From positions 124,001-188,000 of IMG/VR virus record IMGVR_UViG_3300028558_000016: 64,000 bases of DNA; one strand, 5' to 3'. Shown here one piece after another: positions 39-11,670 of the stretch. How positions within the stretch are numbered: position 1 is the first letter of the stretch; each line of letters begins with the position of its first letter. The notes below the pieces were generated by a model. It was given only the letters and a program-made list of their open reading frames with translations, ran no database searches and was not told the origin of the DNA. The position numbers were made by a program, and so were the translations under genes.

Positions 39-112
39 GGTGGCGTAGTTCAGCTGGTTAGAATGCCTGCCTGTCACGCAGGAGGTCACGGGTTCGAGTC
101 CCGTCGTCACCG
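39..112 (+). tRNA. tRNA-Asp(GTC)
   Basis: Cloverleaf: acceptor GGTGGCG/CGTCACC, anticodon arm CCTGC-CTGTCAC-GCAGG, T-loop TTCGAGT, G73. Confidence 0.97.
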
Positions 113-117
113 CAAAT

Positions 118-128
118 GTTCTTTGAAA
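118..128 (+). promoter_or_regulatory. boxA-like antitermination motif in tRNA array
   Basis: GTTCTTTGAAA in spacer between tRNA-Asp and tRNA-Glu; variant GTTCTTTTGATAT at 525-537. Confidence 0.5.
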
Positions 129-129
129 T

Positions 130-203
130 GGTCCTATGGTGGAATTGGTTAACACGTCAGTTTCTCAAACTGAAGATTACGGGTTCGATCCCCGTTGGGA
201 CTA
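130..203 (+). tRNA. tRNA-Glu(CTC)
   Basis: Acceptor GGTCCTA/TGGGACT, anticodon arm TCAGT-TTCTCAA-ACTGA, T-loop TTCGATC. Confidence 0.93.
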
Positions 204-206
204 CGA

Positions 207-304
207 ATGAATTAAGCCGATAGACTGGTTAATGGCGCGTCGACAACGTCCGTGATAAGGTTTCCATGATGAAACTCATGCTGATCACGTAGGCTAATTC
301 ACTT
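207..304 (+). ncRNA. Unassigned structured RNA in tRNA array
   Basis: Closing helix TGAATT-a-AGCC/GGCT-AATTCA; inner helices CGTGAT/ATCACG and GTTTC/GAAAC; 3' end resembles window positions 1-20. Confidence 0.45.
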
Positions 305-308
305 ATTT

Positions 309-385
309 GGGGCCTTAGCTCAGTTGGCCAGAGCACCTGCCTTGCACGCAGGGGGTCATCGGTTCGAATCCGATAGGCTCCACCA
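309..385 (+). tRNA. tRNA-Ala(TGC), CCA encoded
   Basis: GGGGCCT/AGGCTCC with G3:U70, anticodon arm CCTGC-CTTGCAC-GCAGG, ends ACCA. Confidence 0.98.
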
Positions 386-399
386 AATGATTAGTTGAA

Positions 400-677
400 G
401 TAGATGGAAAATCGTTCTGTTGGTAACCATTTTCCAAATTAATGTGATGATGTCTCAGACTTATATCACGAACCAACAAAGAGTGGTGAACTTAAAAATC
501 ACCGTGAGTAAAAAAGAAGATAACGTTCTTTTGATATTTAAAAACAAGAAGTCGATGATCTACCTTGAAAAAGGTGAATCAACGAAAGTTCCGATCCCAA
601 TGATCACAACGTGTTTTACGTTGAAGAAGTTTAGATTGAAATTATCGTTCGACTTAATGTGTGAAAAATAATTTCAC
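400..677 (+). ncRNA. Unassigned multi-hairpin spacer RNA
   Basis: Helices TGGAAAAT/ATTTTCCA (405-436), GGTGA/TCACC, long-range AAGTCGA(549-555)/TCGACTT(649-655) enclosing several hairpins, GTGAAA/TTTCAC abutting the next tRNA. Confidence 0.4.
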
Positions 678-751
678 GCTCCTGTAGTGGAACTGGTTAA
701 CACGTCCGCCTTTCACGCGGAAGATCGCGGGTTCGAACCCCGTCGGGAGTA
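678..751 (+). tRNA. tRNA-Glu(TTC)
   Basis: GCTCCTG/CGGGAGT, anticodon arm TCCGC-CTTTCAC-GCGGA, T-loop TTCGAAC. Confidence 0.95.
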
Positions 752-756
752 CAAAT

Positions 757-842
757 GTTGCCGTATGCAAATTGGTTTAAGCGAACAGACTTTCAATCTG
801 TGTTCCGTATGGAACGTGCGGGTTCGAACCCCGTCGGCAATA
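757..842 (+). tRNA. Atypical class II (long variable arm) tRNA with TTC (Glu) anticodon
   Basis: GTTGCCG/CGGCAAT, anticodon arm ACAGA-CTTTCAA-TCTGT, variable arm GTTCC-GTAT-GGAAC, T arm GCGGG-TTCGAAC-CCCGT, A73. Confidence 0.85.
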
Positions 843-928
843 CAAAAATAAAATAATAGGAGGACCCAGGCTGTGGACGCAACAAAAATGTAATTTCTCT
901 TTACGAACAGTTTTGCAAAGAGAACGGA

Positions 929-1720
929 GTGGAATTTGAAATAGTAAAATCCGTAATTCCACATGATGACACAACTCTTTTCTGCTGTTCAGGAATGCAA
1001 CAGTATAAAAGCAAGTTTAAAGATCAAAATTATAAATGCACGATTTCAAACATCCAACCGTGCATCAGATTAAATGATCTTGAAGAAATAGGAGACAGCA
1101 CTCATTTCCTATACTTCAACATGATGGGATTCTTTTCTTTCAGAGAATGGACTGTGAAAAGAACAATTGATTTTTGGATGTCGTTCATTAATAAGATTGG
1201 TCTTAAAGTGGATTATGTTACAATCCATCCAGACAAAAAAGAATGGAAAGACTTTTATATTGAATACAATGTTGAAGTAAAAGAAGATCTCGAATGCACT
1301 TGGACTGATGGAGACCTTGGAGGATACTGCACAGAATTTTATGTGAACGGTATTGAGATAGGAAACATAGTCAATTGCAATGGTGATTGCATAGATGTTG
1401 GATTTGGTTTAGAAAGACTTGACATGCTTGTCAACAATAAAACAAAAGATGAGATAAGCGTGTTGAAGGAAACCATTGAAAAGATAATTGAAAGCGGTTA
1501 TGTCCCTGGACCTAAACAGCAGGGATACATCTTGAGAAAGCTTTTGAGATTGTTATATGTGAAAGGTGGAAGTATCGATCATGAATTCTTTGTCAAGGAA
1601 AAAGAAAGACAGGAACGATTGGTAAGAAAATATTCTTTGCTAAAACAAAAGCACAAAGACAAAAGCAAAGAATGGTGGTATGGAACACATGGAATTGATT
1701 TGAATGAAATGGGGCCTTAG
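929..1720 (+). CDS. alaS: Miniature alanyl-tRNA synthetase (aminoacylation domain only; true start may be about 12 codons upstream)
   Basis: DDTTLFCCSGMQQYK, QPCIRLNDLEEIGD..H..YFNMMGFFSF, IEIGNIV, IDVGFGLERL, GYILRKLLR; no editing or C-Ala domain. Confidence 0.9.
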   Translation: MEFEIVKSVIPHDDTTLFCCSGMQQYKSKFKDQNYKCTISNIQPCIRLNDLEEIGDSTHFLYFNMMGFFSFREWTVKRTIDFWMSFINKIGLKVDYVTIHPDKKEWKDFYIEYNVEVKEDLECTWTDGDLGGYCTEFYVNGIEIGNIVNCNGDCIDVGFGLERLDMLVNNKTKDEISVLKETIEKIIESGYVPGPKQQGYILRKLLRLLYVKGGSIDHEFFVKEKERQERLVRKYSLLKQKHKDKSKEWWYGTHGIDLNEMGP

Positions 1721-1785
1721 CTCATTTGGCTTAGAGCGCTTGCCTGGCAGGCAAGAGGTGACGGGTTCGAAACCCGTAGGCTCCA
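1711..1785 (+). tRNA. tRNA-Ala(GGC), overlaps alaS stop codon
   Basis: GGGGCCT/AGGCTCC with G3:U70, anticodon arm CTTGC-CTGGCAG-GCAAG. Confidence 0.95.
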
Positions 1786-1855
1786 CTATCGGAAAGGATC
1801 ACAACATCCCGTACGAGAAAGAACGACACAACTGTTGTGAGTTGGAAAGTTCTTC

Positions 1856-1927
1856 GGGATCATAGTATAAGGGCAAGTACGCATCCCGCTCAGGGATGAA
1901 ATGCAGGTTCGAATCCTGTTGGTTCTA
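1856..1927 (+). tRNA. Atypical tRNA, CTC anticodon with G33 and G3:U70
   Basis: GGGATCA/TGGTTCT (3 G:U pairs), D arm GTAT..GTAC, CATCC-CGCTCAG-GGATG, T arm GCAGG-TTCGAAT-CCTGT. Confidence 0.75.
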
Positions 1928-1932
1928 CAATT

Positions 1933-2007
1933 GGGGAATTGATTTGAAATTGGCTATCATGTTAGACTTGCAATCTTTCGTTACGGGTTCGAGCCCCGTA
2001 TTCTCCA
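1933..2007 (+). tRNA. Degenerate tRNA-Ala(TGC)
   Basis: GGGGAAT/ATTCTCC with G3:U70, canonical T arm, loop CTTGCAA; weak D stem and only 3 bp anticodon stem. Confidence 0.7.
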
Positions 2008-2014
2008 CAATTAG

Positions 2015-2022
2015 TATATTTG
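2015..2022 (+). promoter_or_regulatory. Bacteroidota-type -7 promoter box (TAnnTTTG)
   Basis: TATATTTG in the context TTAGTATATTTGTA, shared with 39447 and 54559. Confidence 0.55.
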
Positions 2023-2072
2023 TATATGATTATCAAACTTAAATATTGTTTCGTGTATGTTGATTTTCGATC

Positions 2073-2306
2073 TTGTGGATCGAAATCAAATACATCAAAG
2101 TCGCAGAAAAGCAACTTAAGAAAGTCGATTTAAACAAAGTCGAAAAGCATCGCAAATTCCTCGAAGAAGGAGGAGAGATGATGCCGATCGATGTTGTTCA
2201 AATCAACGACACTGAGTATTGCATTTGTGGAAATGGAAGACATCGCTACTTCGGTTGTCTTGCAGCAGGCTTCACTATAATCGAAGCTAACGTATTAAAT
2301 GAATAA
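2073..2306 (+). CDS. Small ParB/sulfiredoxin-like domain protein
   Basis: MPIDVVQ...YCICGNGRHRYFG resembles the ParB-N PI.V....dG.HR motif. Confidence 0.65.
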   Translation: MWIEIKYIKVAEKQLKKVDLNKVEKHRKFLEEGGEMMPIDVVQINDTEYCICGNGRHRYFGCLAAGFTIIEANVLNE

Positions 2307-2307
2307 C

Positions 2308-2390
2308 GCACCCGTGGCCGAGCGGAACCGAAAGGTGAAAGGCACAGGTCTGCAAAACTTGCAACGCCAGTTCGAATCTGGCCGGGTGCT
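2308..2390 (+). tRNA. tRNA-Cys(GCA) with extra hairpin in D-loop
   Basis: GCACCCG/CGGGTGC, U73, CAGGT-CTGCAAA-ACTTG; D-loop contains ACC-GAAA-GGT. Confidence 0.9.
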
Positions 2391-3886: not shown

Positions 3887-4309
3887 ATGATAGAAAATAG
3901 AAAAGCTCGTCATGAGTATGAAATATTAGAAGAATTTAAAACTGGAATGGTTCTTGTTGGGTCTGAAGTTAAAAGCATCAGAGATGGAAAAGCAAGCATC
4001 GCAGAGTCCTATTGTTTATTGATTAACGGAGAAATGTTCATTCGCAACATGCACATTGATCCATACGAGAAAGCACAGACTCCACACGAAGTCAGAAGAG
4101 ATCGAAAGCTTCTATTAAAGAAACAAGAGCTTAAGAGAATTGGAAATAAAATGATCGATAAAGGTCTTGCCCTTGTGCCTTTGAGGATCTTTGAAGAAAA
4201 AGGAATATTCAAATTGCAAATAGCAATAGGCAAGGGCAAAAAACTCTATGACAAGAGACAATCCATCAAGGAGAGAGATGTCAGCAGAGACTTAGCAAGA
4301 AACACTTAA
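3887..4309 (+). CDS. smpB: SsrA-binding protein SmpB
   Basis: ENRKARHEYEI, GMVLVGSEVKSIR, RDRKLLLKK, GKGKKLYDKRQSIKERD. Confidence 0.97.
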   Translation: MIENRKARHEYEILEEFKTGMVLVGSEVKSIRDGKASIAESYCLLINGEMFIRNMHIDPYEKAQTPHEVRRDRKLLLKKQELKRIGNKMIDKGLALVPLRIFEEKGIFKLQIAIGKGKKLYDKRQSIKERDVSRDLARNT

Positions 4310-5029: not shown

Positions 5030-5692
5030 ATGATAATAAAGGCTTTGCCGAAGAGAGATTTCGATGCTCTCATGATTGAGAAAAACCTCAACGATTCAAA
5101 TATCGACGAAGAAAAAAACCTGTATCTTATTTCCATAAACTACTCAGACTTTCCAGATTGGATGCCGGAGGAAGCATATCCCCATTTCAAGGAAGACCAT
5201 TCTAATGTATTGAGATTATTTTATGATGACGTCTTGCAAGACACTCAAATAAAAATAGTAGCAACTGGAGAATACGCAACAGCAAAAGCTTTCACAAAGG
5301 AAGATTCCATTAAGGTCATAGAATTCTTGTCAAAGATAAGAATGAATGCCAATACTGAAATTTTAGTTCATTGTAAAGCTGGAAAATCAAGGAGTGTTGC
5401 AACAGCTCATTTCATTAGCGAATACTTTGGCATGAATACATCATTAATTTATACTGATGACGAGATGAAGCCAAACCTTACAGTGCTTAATCTGTTAAGG
5501 CAAGAAGCTCCAAAGAAATGTCCAAAGTGTAAATCGGATTTCAAATGCAGAGCAATTGAAAAAATATCAAATGCTGAAATCAAATGTTGGTGTCAGTCTA
5601 TAAAAATACCAGATGATACGTTAAAAGATTTGGCTGATGAATTCAATTATAAATGTTTATGCCCTTCGTGTTTGACAGAATACGAAACATGA
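5030..5692 (+). CDS. Protein tyrosine/dual-specificity phosphatase fused to Cys-rich CWC domain
   Basis: LVHCKAGKSRS (CX5R) plus C-terminal CPKC...C..CWC...CLCPSCL. Confidence 0.8.
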   Translation: MIIKALPKRDFDALMIEKNLNDSNIDEEKNLYLISINYSDFPDWMPEEAYPHFKEDHSNVLRLFYDDVLQDTQIKIVATGEYATAKAFTKEDSIKVIEFLSKIRMNANTEILVHCKAGKSRSVATAHFISEYFGMNTSLIYTDDEMKPNLTVLNLLRQEAPKKCPKCKSDFKCRAIEKISNAEIKCWCQSIKIPDDTLKDLADEFNYKCLCPSCLTEYET

Positions 5693-6676: not shown

Positions 6677-7153
6677 ATGAAAACAATCTACACGCTATTA
6701 ATAATGACGATCGGGCTGAGCACGGCAGCCTATGGACAGAAAAAAGCCGGGACAGCAATTCCATCTATGGGATCAGCATATTTAAAAAAGGAAAAGGATC
6801 AAAAAAGTGCAAGCATAGTTGCGGAAGCATTTAAAAAGAAAACTCCAGGAACATATTATGGTTCAACAAAAACAGCTACAGTTATAACTGATGCTGGAAA
6901 AACTTACACCATCGCACATAACACCGACGAAGAAAAAATGCTTGAAGATGGACATGTAGCTTATACAAATAATAGCAAAGACACATTATTTATTTTAAAT
7001 AGTCACCTTGGAAAAATGATAAAAGAAGTTTGGGACATTGATACAAAATTTGCTGGAAAAAAACCGGTTATATGTATGGTTCCAAGCATCACTGCTGTCA
7101 TTACAGCACGTAAGTCAAAATCAATTACCGACAAAAAATTATTAAAGAATTAA
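6677..7153 (+). CDS. Hypothetical exported protein
   Basis: Signal peptide ending AYG-Q. Confidence 0.6.
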   Translation: MKTIYTLLIMTIGLSTAAYGQKKAGTAIPSMGSAYLKKEKDQKSASIVAEAFKKKTPGTYYGSTKTATVITDAGKTYTIAHNTDEEKMLEDGHVAYTNNSKDTLFILNSHLGKMIKEVWDIDTKFAGKKPVICMVPSITAVITARKSKSITDKKLLKN

Positions 7154-7767
7154 TTACAAATGATGGTTCCACGCTGCGACGAGTATCTACGTTGCAGAGG
7201 AAGTTCAGGACATCACTGCTTAAGATAGGAGAATAAAAGGAATGCGTGCAGCGAACTAAAAATTAGTAGGGGTCAAACCCTTCTTTACAATGGTAGAGAG
7301 TACAAATCTCGAGTAGGCAACCAAAGAGCAAATGTATTCGTACTATAGTGCCGGTTTTACGTTTAGATTGTATTAACGTTACCAGTTTTCACGGCACACA
7401 GATTCCATCGGCAGGTGGAAAATGTATCAAACTGATGAACTATGGACATGCGCGTAGAAGAGGATTGGCCTAACCATAAGAGAAAACTTTGGGACAGGAA
7501 TACAAATGCATGGCTCTAATATGGTCTCGGCCGGAATTGAGCAAAGAGGAAGATAGAACAACCTTTAACATGTGTTTGCTTGGCCATTATAATCCAGAAC
7601 AGTTGGCATACCAACTAATCAGCATTCTGAAATTCGCCTTGACTATCGAGGATGCAACACAAACAGTCTGAGTCGGTGAGCAGGGTTTTGAGGACGGGTT
7701 GTGGCATAGATAAATGTGGAACACGTGGAAACACGCACAGAATCCTGGCTATAGTCAAATGTAATTA
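7151..7767 (+). ncRNA. rnpB: RNase P RNA, type A-like, about 617 nt, expanded S-domain, no P18
   Basis: GAGGAAGTTCAGGA (7197-7210) pairs with ACAGAATCCTGGCTAT (7737-7752; P4); P1, P2 TTCCAC/GTGGAA, P3, P5 CATC/GATG(CAA), P6 CTGCT/AGCAG; TAGATAAATG at 7707. Confidence 0.88.
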
Positions 7768-7801
7768 TGGGCTCATCCTTCCAATAGGAGGACAGAGGTT
7801 G

Positions 7802-7834
7802 AAAAACGCCAGCTTGAAAAGGTTGGCGTTTTTT
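7802..7834 (+). terminator. Intrinsic terminator after rnpB
   Basis: AAAAACGCCAGCTT-GAAA-AGGTTGGCGTTTTT. Confidence 0.9.
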
Positions 7835-7850
7835 GGTTTAATACTTTCGC

Positions 7851-7858
7851 GATATATA
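7851..7858 (+). promoter_or_regulatory. Putative phage late promoter RATATATA (first of 11 copies)
   Basis: Same motif before starts at 13108, 21625, 23403, 31266, 32066, 36463, 40683, 43966, 50610, 55241. Confidence 0.6.
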
Positions 7859-7863
7859 AATCA

Positions 7864-10800
7864 ATGAAGCAGAATGTAGCATTTAATTCCTTGACGGACA
7901 TCACTTTAAAGGAAGCTCTCGCTGTTGCAGTAGAATCTTTTCCAACTGAAGATTTTTCAGGAATACACACCGCAATAGAGCTTGAGGATAAGATAAACAA
8001 GATGGATCAAACCTTGTACGTGGAAATAGACACGGACGGTCCTGTCATTGCAGCACTTCAAGCTGAAGCAGAATTAAAGGCTCAGGTTGATGCTGACGTT
8101 GATTCTTTGAATTGCGATATTCCACCTACCACAGACATAACTGCCGACGATATAGAAAACACAGACTTATGCGAGGAACCTGCTGAATTTCCAGATCCAA
8201 TAGTTGTTCCTGATTCTGAATTGACAGACCTTCTAAAAACTCTTGCAGAAGAACAAAGAAAGAAATTTGGTGTATTGGAAGATCCAAATTCTCCAGGACC
8301 AGATGAAACCAAAGATCTTTTAAGCTGTGTGTCAAGCATGACTGACATCACAAATGCTCTTGTTGTATTAAACAACAAAGAAAGAAACATCAATAACACG
8401 TTAATAAATCTTGAAGAGTTCCTGTATAACTACAGAATAATGGAAGCTTATTTCAAGAAGAGAGTGCAAACCGTCGATCAGCTTCTTGGTTTATTCGATC
8501 CTTTGATAACTCAAGAAAGAGATTACCAAGCGCAAATAGACATAGTGACTCCTCAGGAAGCACAAGCAAAAAAAGATTATGACGATGCTAAAGCAAGATT
8601 ACAATCTCAAACAGGAAGCGCCGGAGGAAGTTCATCATCTGGAACTACATCAGGAAGTTCAGGTGGAACTACATCCAACACAAACACCACAACAAGCAAC
8701 GCAACGTCAGAAACGACAACGTCTAATACAACAAATTCTACTTCATCAACATCGACGAGCAACACATCCACAGGTTCAACTCCTGTTGAAACTCAACAAC
8801 ATGTTGATCAATTAAAATCTGCGTTCGATACTTTACATGCACAGCTCGTAGATTTACAAAACAAATTACAAGCAGTCAAGGACGAAATATCCGCGGACGA
8901 AAATGCAATATCTCCTTTCTTAAAAGAAATAAATTTTGAGAAGACGCAAGCGTTCTTAGATAAGAATAATCAAGAGCAAGAGGAAGCAAGATTGCAATGG
9001 CTCCAAGAAAATCTTAGCAATTTATTCAATGGAGGTTCCACTGCATTTTCGAGAGTTGCAACATTTAGTTCAAGAACAACTCCTAAAGAAAATCCTGGAA
9101 GCAATGCTCCAAACCAATCATTCTTGCTTAACATACAATTTGAATTAAAGGATCCTGAAAACGTATTGGCAGGAAGACCAAAGACCTATGCTCAAACAAG
9201 CCAAAACACAACGATAGATCCATTTGATGGAAATACACCACACGGTATTTTGTATGACCAATTTTATAATATATGGGGAGACGTTGAATTATATTTCACG
9301 AGAGAAGAAAGAGGATTAACTGCCAACAGCAATCTTGCAGCTCCACAATTAAAGGGAACAGGTGCTGAAGCATTCAAATCAAACTTCATAGCTGACACCG
9401 GGAAGTTCAGAGACTTCTATGAAAACTTTGCAGCAAGACACAGAGACAAAACAACGCTTGTCAAAAACACAATAATTGAACCGGCCCTTTTAACTATAGT
9501 TTCCGACCTTGAAGAACTTGCAATAAAAGAAGTGCAATACTTATTTGCATTTGGTAAGGCATTTGAAAATCTTCCAGCTGAGTCGTCTAAATTGACTGAC
9601 ATAATAACTGCGATAAGAACATCATCGGAAATTTACATAGCAAGAATTCTTGAGCTTAGACAAGATTTAGGATTTGTTACTCAAGCCCATAAGGATGTTC
9701 TTGATGCAATAGAAAAGAAGAAGCAAGAATTTCTTCAAGTTCCTTGCGCAATGAATCTTCCTAATCCACCAGAAAAAGAACCAGCGACTCCTGGCGCTGA
9801 TCCTCTTGGTGCTGACACAATGCAAAACATTTATCCAGACGATCCTGATCCAACCAAGTTTTGCTATTGGGTGAAGTTTGCTGCATTTGCGACTGCAGTA
9901 AACATTCTGCCTCTTCCAGGAAATGGTGGCTTCAAATATTGGCCGATTGGATTACAGATTCCAAACCCATCAGGAATAACAAACATTCCTCTTCCTATAA
10001 TATGGATTCCAATTGCAGTGATAGTTCTCACTGCTGGAATCTTTGTCATTTTCATTGGACAATGTGGAATATGTCCTTCTCCTTTCGTGTTCTATGTTGG
10101 TCCCAACGGAGAAAAGAAATTCATCATCTCATTAAGACCAACCGATGATTTCGGTGCGAATGCAAGCGAAGCCATTATAAAAACTTTGGACAAAGGCGGA
10201 ATTGCAATCAAGACGACGATGAATGCAATGCTCAACAAGATAAACATTCCTGGATTTAAACCAATAGGAGATCCTGATGGAGCTTCAACAATTCTCGATG
10301 ACACGAAAGACAAGATAATAAAGAAAATAAATAAAATCGGACTTCCTGATGTAACTCCATTGACGAGCAAACTAACCACGCATTCTACCATCGCAGACAA
10401 GAGAGCTGCATTAAAAGAAGTGGTGAACAAACATCTTGACAAGTTATCTCTTCCAACAATTAAGATTCCAAAGAATGCAGCAAATGTTAATCCAAAACCT
10501 TTGCCAATGTTGGAAGTCGTAAATCAATTGGTTAAATTGTTTAAGATGGATCTTCCTCAAATAGCAATACCTGCTGCCGATAAAATAAATTTGAAGACTA
10601 AGTTAATATCAAAAGTCGGTGAGATAAAAATCTCTGACCTTCCTGAGATAAATGTTCCTCCTATAGATTTCAATACGGCAACGCCTGACGACCAAAACAA
10701 ATGGGCCAAGAAAATAAAGGACGCATTGAAGAAGGGAGTGTCAGTAGGACATTTAAAAATAACTCCGAAAGAACTTGGTTTAACTACTTCAGTTCTTGGA

Positions 10801-11670
10801 AGCGGAATCGTATTCATCAATCCTTACAAATGTAAACCAGGAGCGAAAGGTCTTGCAATTCCTCCATTGTCACCAGCAGCGATTGTTGGTCTTGGTGCAA
10901 TTAAAATTGCGGCAGATACAGTTGTGGATGGATTAACCATTTCTCAATTGAAGGTGTTATTGAAAAGCACTGGAGGCGCATTGACAACTGGATTACTAAC
11001 GAAAACATTAACTGGAACTTTGGCAGCATTGCCAGATGTTGAAATACCAAATCCATCTAAAGTGAGCATCAAGGACATGATGAAGGATTCTTCTTTGAAG
11101 ATCGTTAAGATGCAACTTCCTTCTTTGCCTGATCCGACAAAGCCACCTCAAATACAAATACCAATTCCAGGAGAAGCATTAAAAGGAATCGTAAAGACTG
11201 CTGTCATATCAACGATCGATGTATTTCCTTTGAATGACATCGATTTGTCAAAGATGAGTGGAATTGATGTTAAGCAATTGGTGATAACAATGATGGAAAC
11301 ATCGTTCAAGCCAGTTGAAGACTTCTTAAATCCTATTTTGAAAGTAATATCAGTTTATAAATCATCTAAAGATAAAACGTTTGCAGAACTTTTAGGATTA
11401 AAGAAAGTAAGCAAAGATGATAATCTTGTAACCACCGTAACGAAAGAAGCCATGGATGGGGCAATCATTGCTCTTAAAGCTTTGGCACTTGTACCTTATC
11501 CTGCAGTTGCCTTCTTGCCTGAACCATTTAAGAAGCTTCACCCTATACTATCCTCTGATGACTTGCCACCTTGGAAGAGGTTCACATTAGATAATTTCTT
11601 ATTCGTAACATTCTTAGACCAATTCTGCTCACAAGGCAAGAAGGGCGGAGGTTTCTTAGAGAACCCATAA
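7864..11670 (+). CDS. Large hypothetical (probable virion) protein with coiled coils, Ser/Thr linker, Pro-rich C-terminus
   Basis: 1268 aa ORF after RATATATA; S/T-rich tract about 8610-8790; hydrophobic Pro-rich segment. Confidence 0.6.
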   Translation: MKQNVAFNSLTDITLKEALAVAVESFPTEDFSGIHTAIELEDKINKMDQTLYVEIDTDGPVIAALQAEAELKAQVDADVDSLNCDIPPTTDITADDIENTDLCEEPAEFPDPIVVPDSELTDLLKTLAEEQRKKFGVLEDPNSPGPDETKDLLSCVSSMTDITNALVVLNNKERNINNTLINLEEFLYNYRIMEAYFKKRVQTVDQLLGLFDPLITQERDYQAQIDIVTPQEAQAKKDYDDAKARLQSQTGSAGGSSSSGTTSGSSGGTTSNTNTTTSNATSETTTSNTTNSTSSTSTSNTSTGSTPVETQQHVDQLKSAFDTLHAQLVDLQNKLQAVKDEISADENAISPFLKEINFEKTQAFLDKNNQEQEEARLQWLQENLSNLFNGGSTAFSRVATFSSRTTPKENPGSNAPNQSFLLNIQFELKDPENVLAGRPKTYAQTSQNTTIDPFDGNTPHGILYDQFYNIWGDVELYFTREERGLTANSNLAAPQLKGTGAEAFKSNFIADTGKFRDFYENFAARHRDKTTLVKNTIIEPALLTIVSDLEELAIKEVQYLFAFGKAFENLPAESSKLTDIITAIRTSSEIYIARILELRQDLGFVTQAHKDVLDAIEKKKQEFLQVPCAMNLPNPPEKEPATPGADPLGADTMQNIYPDDPDPTKFCYWVKFAAFATAVNILPLPGNGGFKYWPIGLQIPNPSGITNIPLPIIWIPIAVIVLTAGIFVIFIGQCGICPSPFVFYVGPNGEKKFIISLRPTDDFGANASEAIIKTLDKGGIAIKTTMNAMLNKINIPGFKPIGDPDGASTILDDTKDKIIKKINKIGLPDVTPLTSKLTTHSTIADKRAALKEVVNKHLDKLSLPTIKIPKNAANVNPKPLPMLEVVNQLVKLFKMDLPQIAIPAADKINLKTKLISKVGEIKISDLPEINVPPIDFNTATPDDQNKWAKKIKDALKKGVSVGHLKITPKELGLTTSVLGSGIVFINPYKCKPGAKGLAIPPLSPAAIVGLGAIKIAADTVVDGLTISQLKVLLKSTGGALTTGLLTKTLTGTLAALPDVEIPNPSKVSIKDMMKDSSLKIVKMQLPSLPDPTKPPQIQIPIPGEALKGIVKTAVISTIDVFPLNDIDLSKMSGIDVKQLVITMMETSFKPVEDFLNPILKVISVYKSSKDKTFAELLGLKKVSKDDNLVTTVTKEAMDGAIIALKALALVPYPAVAFLPEPFKKLHPILSSDDLPPWKRFTLDNFLFVTFLDQFCSQGKKGGGFLENP

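Follow-up and report, generated by a model that had tools for sequence, protein, structure and literature searches.

Here, we analysed a 64,000-nucleotide stretch (hereafter the window), which represents bases 124001-188000 of the 482,156-bp IMG/VR virus record IMGVR_UViG_3300028558_000016 obtained from a rhizosphere metagenome. The genome has a G+C content of 36.8% and carries 55 tRNA genes, including three with a CUA anticodon, as well as SmpB and a tmRNA (genome positions 223297-223699, 101 bits), while no homolog of RnpA (PF00825) was found. A tRNA array is located at window positions 39-2384. About 5 kb downstream of it, a 710-nt non-coding gap separates a 158-aa ORF ending at 7153 from a 1268-aa ORF starting at 7864. 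Within this gap, positions 7151-7767 (+) hold an RNA gene related to that of RNase P, the ribozyme which trims tRNA precursors. A preliminary description of this region, made from the sequence alone, had reported a phage-encoded RNase P RNA with an intact catalytic domain, no P18 and an enlarged specificity domain (S-domain) of about 410 nt. We found that the observation itself holds, since every element named there is present at its given position. The interpretation is only partly supported: the assignment as a phage-encoded RNase P RNA is supported, whereas an enlarged specificity domain is not supported as stated.

The 5' part of the catalytic domain (7155-7223, +) comprises the P1 5' strand (7155-7164), the P2 5' strand GGTTCCA (7165-7171), the P3 hairpin (7174-7180/7191-7197), J3/4 together with the P4 5' strand GAGGAAGTTCAGGAC (7197-7211), the P5 5' strand CATC (7211-7214) and the P6 5' strand CTGCT (7216-7220). 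P1 can be extended to 7151-7164/7754-7767. The 3' part (7648-7767, +) contains the P5 3' strand GATG (7651-7654), P15-P17 (7658-7704) with L17 AGCAG (7679-7683) as P6 3' strand and the L15 motif GGT (7697-7699, within CGGGTTG 7695-7701), J18/2 CATAGATAAATG (7705-7716, including TAGATAAATG at 7707-7716), the P2 3' strand TGGAAC (7717-7722), a P19-like hairpin CGTG-GAAA-CACG (7724-7735), ACAGAA followed by the P4 3' strand TCCTGGC (7737-7749) and the P1 3' strand (7754-7763). In P4, GTTCAGGA (7203-7210) faces TCCTGGC (7743-7749), such that the conserved J3/4-P4 5' strand (CR-I) pairs with ACAGAATCCTGGC at 7737-7749 (CR-V) in the expected pseudoknot. Between both parts lies a P7-like helix formed by GATAG (7224-7228) and CTATC (7643-7647), with a conserved GAG (7229-7231), a stub-hairpin stem GAAT (7231-7234)/ATTC (7632-7635) and the joiner GCCTTGA (7636-7642). 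The 5' and 3' sides of this stub span 7224-7235 and 7632-7647, respectively, and its pairing was checked in a constrained fold. Nested in the tip of the stub hairpin is an additional RNA of about 390 nt (7236-7631, +), which we refer to as X. The pair GGAATGC (7239-7245)/GCATTCT (7622-7628), previously noted as enclosing about 375 nt, encloses 376 nt. Downstream of the gene, positions 7801-7840 (+) form an intrinsic-terminator-like 15-bp hairpin (z = -4.1) followed by a T run. A pattern scan for terminators did not call it, but an equivalent hairpin with T run follows the RNA in the relatives L177, L178, L183, L184 and L186 introduced below.

A search of the window and the genome with Rfam at gathering thresholds yielded no RNase P hit. 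With permissive settings, the bacterial type-A model RF00010 aligned from model position 1 to 367 over 7155-7767, which is nearly the span proposed before. This alignment recovers P1, P2, P3, J3/4-P4, P5, P15-P17, J18/2, a P19-type insertion and the P4 3' strand, but assigns no residues to P18, for which the model has 24 nt, and skips 154 S-domain positions against 432 nt of sequence. Hence, the score is only 11.5 bits (E 0.23-0.39; gathering score 100 bits), and on Rfam alone the assignment would not be significant. A blastn search of the locus against 50,697 GenBank phages gave no match, and a search of IMG/VR seeded with the protein of the downstream gene gave nothing.

We thus turned to relatives of the RNA. 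A 15-mer P4 pattern alone proved too unspecific (118 loci, of which only 12 were real), but scanning IMG/VR and JGI metagenomes with the core motifs of the window gave 38 distinct RNAs with both P4 strands in order, located in tRNA/tmRNA arrays of phage contigs of 36-501 kb. A few are ordinary type-A RNAs exceeding the Rfam threshold (loci L134 with 185 bits and L047 with 112 bits). Most are much shorter, with only 46-60 nt between the P5 strands, a stretch holding the P6 5' strand and a P7-like helix (typically GGUGG/CCACC) that contains GAG, a small hairpin and GUUNNNA. These 'mini' forms match RNase P models significantly but below gathering (E 2e-9 to 7.5e-13), and neither for them nor for the window was a match to the archaeal type-T model RF02357 reported, the best clan members being RF00010 and RF00373. 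The window shows the same stub layout as 33 mini forms, while its S-part of 441 nt is the largest by far. A profile of these 33 mini RNAs, built without the window, hit 7153-~7237 (E 3e-9) and 7630-7767 (E 2e-24), broken at profile position 91/92 in the stub-hairpin loop, and nothing else in the 482-kb genome. However, since this set was fished with motifs of the window and is biased towards its P4 and J18/2 sequences, part of that score is there by construction.

To obtain relatives independently of the RNA motifs, we used the 1268-aa downstream protein, which has 18 homologs with 43-89% identity, and inspected their contigs. In most of them, the RNA lies upstream of the homologous gene. The arrangement of the window, with X nested in the stub hairpin, is found in L176 (89% protein identity to the window; the contig starts inside the P4 5' strand), L177 (74%) and L178/L179 (64%), whereas L183 (49%), L184 (48%) and L185 (44%) possess a mini RNase P RNA only and lack X. 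In L180 (62%), an RNase P 5' half, X and the P7 3' strand are present without a 3' half, followed by a second, complete mini RNase P RNA with its own P1 and a covarying P4. In L181 (65%), X stands alone, closed by an extended stem of its own, and a complete mini RNase P RNA follows 40 nt later. L182 (56%) harbours a truncated RNase P copy beside a homing-endonuclease-type gene, and L186 (50%) a complete mini RNase P RNA plus a 3' fragment of a second one, with homing-endonuclease-type genes nearby. The locus is therefore recombinationally active. Rfam scores remain poor throughout this clade, with only L180b, a copy from the L180 locus, reaching E 0.0065.

Covariation across relatives, which had been proposed beforehand as a test, indicates that the catalytic domain is under selection for structure. 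Across the protein-anchored relatives, P4 occurs in five fully complementary Watson-Crick versions (CAGGA/UCCUG, CGCGA/UCGCG, CAGAA/UUCUG, CCAAG/CUUGG and CGCGU/ACGCG) and P6 switches between ACUGCU/AGCAG, AAACC/GGUUU and UUGCU/AGCAA. P1 is entirely different but complementary in L177 and L178, P2 differs but stays complementary in L184, and the P19 stem covaries while keeping a GNRA loop in L177, L178 and L183. A variant from a watershed metagenome (X6), about 87% identical to the window, has exactly four changes in the 5' core, which form two compensatory double changes in P3 (C7177-G7194 to A-T and C7180-G7191 to T-A). We therefore consider the RNase P assignment as well supported, although the RNA departs from RF00010 in two respects: it lacks the specificity domain P7-P14 with CR-II/CR-III, and its score is below gathering. 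The L15 GGU and the J18/2 motif AGAUNAAUG are present as judged from sequence alone.

X turned out to be an autonomous structured RNA. Its closing helix GAATGC (7240-7245)/GCATTC (7622-7627) is followed by the helix GTGCA (7246-7250)/TGCGC (7449-7453), arm A (7265-7284), arm B (7290-7346, with 7298-7304/7333-7339 and 7308-7310/7326-7328), arm C (7348-7353/7392-7397, enclosing the invariant block 7363-7381), arm D (7403-7420), an invariant junction (7429-7460), the helix GGATT (7462-7466)/AATCC (7591-7595), the long-range helix P-f GGCC (7467-7470)/GGCC (7582-7585), an invariant hairpin (7470-7498), a helix 7503-7512/7569-7578, arm G (7601-7616) and an invariant 3' junction (7615-7629). An alignment of six copies contains 126 invariant positions, grouped in blocks (7240-7252, 7363-7381, 7429-7460, 7470-7498 and 7615-7629) and separated by arms varying in sequence and length. 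Compensatory changes were found in 3 of 5 pairs of arm A, 3 of 6 pairs of the outer stem of arm C, 6 of 12 pairs of arm B (none broken) and 3 of 4 pairs of P-f, and the X6 variant adds further ones. Folding each arm separately recovered the same arms with different sequences in every copy, and the layout of X also draws on a constrained fold. With only six copies (plus two partial variants) from one phage clade and MAFFT-based alignments, these covariation statistics are modest. RNAalifold applied to the full MAFFT alignment missed the covarying variable arms and proposed a CAGUU/AACUG helix, which would be a pseudoknot with the well-supported stem of arm C, and the folding energy of the insert alone is only mildly unusual (z = -2.07) and thus not decisive by itself. 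Compared to L177, X is 77% identical, the core 81-84% and the adjacent coding DNA 67%, so that X is as conserved as the core and more conserved than the neighbouring gene. X is thus a folded RNA under purifying selection, which keeps its invariant blocks whether or not it is covalently inside a working ribozyme.

A profile of the six copies found X once in the genome and in no other fetched locus, including mini forms with other expansions and the genuine S-domains of L047, L111 and L134. Searched alone (7229-7643), it matched no Rfam family at E up to 10, neither RNase P, group I or group II introns nor large RNAs such as GOLLD and ROOL. Three X-specific patterns found nothing in IMG/VR, and one of them found nothing in 185,579 prokaryotic genomes. 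X is not the tmRNA, as the real one lies elsewhere in the genome and neither ARAGORN nor Rfam calls one in X. It is not coding either, since it contains only 41- and 60-aa ORFs with non-ATG starts and the copies differ by 1-nt indels.

Taken together, the comparisons demonstrate the anatomy of the locus: positions 7151-7767 are the only RNase P RNA gene of this phage, it encodes a reduced bacterial-type RNA with a complete catalytic domain (P1-P6, P15-P17 with the L15 GGU, J18/2 and a P19 hairpin) but without P18 and S-domain, and nested in the remaining P7 stub is a separately evolving RNA which in relatives also exists outside an intact RNase P RNA. The absence of RnpA from the genome and the hairpin plus T run behind the gene are likewise observed. 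Everything concerning its operation is inferred from sequence; RNA sequencing runs contained only about 4% of the sampled words of the stretch. In this view, the gene is transcribed as a single RNA of about 610 nt ending at the putative terminator, and the catalytic domain folds around the P4 pseudoknot and, together with host RnpA, removes 5' leaders from the 55 phage tRNAs and the tmRNA precursor, while X folds independently and projects from P7 where the S-domain once sat. The role of X is the weak step. We suggest, with a probability of about 0.5, that X is an accessory module of this minimal ribozyme, which for example captures substrates or docks another RNA or protein and would not need covalent linkage, because it is conserved both nested and detached. 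This suggestion rests on the findings that all six copies are in or next to an RNase P RNA gene on the same strand and that in four of them the stub stem runs straight into the closing helix of X.

But, could X be an independent non-coding RNA with a function unrelated to RNase P, riding in a permissive hairpin or next to the gene for co-expression and stability and possibly released by processing? This remains possible and is nearly as likely as our favoured reading. X keeps its invariant blocks when detached (L181) or when its host RNase P half is truncated (L180), other mini forms carry unrelated expansions of 35-200 nt at the same hairpin tip, and most have no X, which is hence not needed for the ribozyme in general. 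Adjacency to RNase P in a single phage clade may also reflect common descent and not function. On the other hand, every known copy is in or beside an RNase P RNA gene, the pattern searches found none elsewhere in IMG/VR or in the 185,579 genomes, and the X-bearing gene is the only RNase P RNA in the genome, so X has not compromised it. Of the three alternatives offered in the preliminary description for the extra nucleotides, namely altered substrate recognition, replacement of protein contacts or an embedded second RNA, the evidence favours the last.

Other readings appear much less likely. A true, homologous but greatly enlarged S-domain (P7-P14) would sit exactly between the P7 strands, as X does, and some family members (L047, L111 and L134) keep real S-domains, while L175 may keep remnants. 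However, the covariance model skips the whole region, X alone matches no RNase P model at E up to 10, its profile does not hit the real S-domains, the nearest relatives without X have only a stub (L183, L184) and X occurs outside any RNase P RNA in L181, such that this reading is largely excluded. A selfish, intron-like element is also unlikely. It would fit to the interruption of a functional RNA gene, the patchy presence among relatives and the homing-endonuclease-type genes (NUMOD3, DUF7487/TnsA-like) and truncated RNase P copies populating the locus in relatives. Yet, besides the missing group I or group II match at E up to 10 and the lack of an encoded protein, the ends of X pair with each other, unlike those of group I or group II introns, the base before the conserved 5' boundary is A or G and not U, predicted 'ligated exons' give hairpins with 1-2-nt loops in L177, and the L181 copy has no host gene to be spliced from. 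We consider it similarly improbable that the locus is a decaying or non-catalytic relic or a decoy for host RnpA. The low Rfam score, the lack of S-domain and P18 and the truncated copies in relatives (L180a, L182, L186) could point in this direction, but compensatory evolution in P1, P3, P4, P6 and P19, the intact universally conserved nucleotides of J3/4, J18/2 and P4, and the status as only copy in a genome with 55 tRNA genes argue against it.

The core is homologous to bacterial type-A RNase P RNA (RF00010; M1 RNA of E. coli), with which it shares the catalytic-domain architecture and conserved nucleotides, including P1-P5, the P4 and P6 pseudoknots, P15-P17 with the L15 GGU that binds the tRNA 3' CCA, J18/2 and an optional P19, and it probably uses a bacterial RnpA. 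It differs in lacking P18 and P8-P14, in carrying a non-homologous RNA in the remaining hairpin and in being encoded by a phage. The reduction parallels the type-T RNase P RNA of Pyrobaculum and other Thermoproteaceae, which keeps the catalytic domain and has lost almost all of the S-domain; its proteins are described in PMC13462272. Type T, however, is archaeal, works with archaeal proteins and has archaeal-type core features, whereas the phage forms have bacterial-type L15 and J18/2, and no nested extra RNA is known in type T. Engineered bimolecular ribozymes with S-domain and C-domain as separate molecules (PMC9740620 and earlier work) reportedly show that the C-domain can work with a recognition domain supplied in trans, an arrangement suggested by L181. 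Those systems are artificial and use the native S-domain, while X is natural and no S-domain homolog, and its co-operation with the ribozyme is hypothetical. Like GOLLD and ROOL, large ornate RNAs of phages and prophages near tRNA genes (10.1101/2024.12.08.627333), X is a large (hundreds of nt), intricately folded, phage-borne RNA of unknown function associated with tRNA gene clusters, but it is smaller, known from one phage clade only and physically tied to an RNase P RNA gene. Full-text searches in a library that is incomplete found no description of phage-encoded RNase P RNA, of S-domain-less bacterial-type forms in phages or of an X-like RNA, hence the novelty is probable but not certain. 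A more far-reaching, and in our view rather unlikely, possibility not excluded by the data is that X belongs to a new class of large structured RNAs serving as a non-homologous, detachable replacement for the lost specificity domain. This would be a natural ribozyme whose recognition module can be supplied either in cis (window, L176-L178) or in trans (L181), perhaps tuned to the unusual tRNAs of the phage.

RNase P RNA is one of the few universal ribozymes and its two-domain design, catalytic plus specificity, is textbook knowledge. Our results point towards a widespread and apparently undescribed family, in which a broad set of phages appears to carry their own S-domain-less RNase P RNAs inside tRNA arrays. 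If confirmed, this extends the list of translation-related functions that large phages bring along and gives natural minimal ribozymes to study. The nested 390-nt RNA adds a new conserved structured RNA of unknown function, and the locus offers a natural experiment in RNA modularity, as the same module occurs inside a ribozyme, inside a broken ribozyme and beside one.

We found a widespread family of 'mini' RNase P RNAs that lack an S-domain (about 220-260 nt) in phage and metagenome contigs, in which they are nearly always located inside tRNA/tmRNA arrays (loci L015, L019, L032, L043, L071, L075, L112 and L119-L175, e.g. L173:5707-5741 and L125:2904-3101). Rfam detects these RNAs only below the gathering threshold, often through the archaeal model, and our literature search yielded no published description of them.

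The tRNA complement of the phage itself is also unusual. A tRNA-Glu(UUC) of 87 nt with a 5-bp long variable arm is encoded at window 757-843, and genome-wide, Asn, Lys, Met, Gln, His and Trp tRNAs of 84-92 nt were found. Normally short-armed tRNA species appear here in long-arm versions beside ordinary copies, and these are the odd tRNAs to which the preliminary description referred. Outside the window, three tRNA genes with the anticodon CUA (amber suppressors) are present at genome 358020-358092 (-), 368276-368349 (+) and 374278-374351 (+), although the ORFs in the window read normally under table 11. This observation may indicate stop-codon reassignment during part of the infection. The phage additionally encodes SmpB (window 3890-4306; 177 bits) and a full tmRNA about 95 kb away (genome 223297-223699; 101 bits), the latter of which was not called by ARAGORN.

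Among the genes surrounding the RNase P RNA, the upstream ORF (window 5030-5692) combines a weak dual-specificity-phosphatase match with a Cys-rich CWC domain, whereas the conserved downstream protein of 1268 aa (window 7864-11670) has no Pfam match and contains low-complexity Ser/Thr runs. A conserved AATATATAA-type motif, which resembles a T4-late-type promoter, is located immediately upstream of the start codon of the 1268-aa gene (window 7850-7863) in all relatives (L177:3985-4000, L178:3985-4000, L183:2985-3000, L184:2985-3000 and L186:2985-3000). Between the end of P1 and the terminator hairpin lies an additional stable hairpin (window 7769-7800). A near-consensus sigma-70-type promoter match (TTAACA-17-TATAAT, 11 of 12) was found inside the nested RNA X on the + strand (window 7565-7593), however, in A+T-rich DNA this is probably a chance occurrence.

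In relatives, the RNase P locus is a recombination hot spot, in which truncated 5' or 3' halves of RNase P RNA, two paralogous mini lineages, and genes for NUMOD3 or DUF7487/TnsA-like endonucleases placed right at the break points were observed (L180:2495-3190, L182:540-1314, L186:1099-1273 and 2769-2921, L181:2197-2940). The ribozyme has a second variable site, as the P3 hairpin of the RNase P RNA is expanded by about 45 nt relative to the window in the relatives L178 and L179 (L178:3334-3400). A soil-metagenome relative (run X7) replaces 64 nt of X (window 7475-7538) with 70 unrelated nucleotides, while the flanks remain about 97% identical. Different peripheral arms are also present in the relative L176 (89% protein identity), so X evolves by swapping arms.
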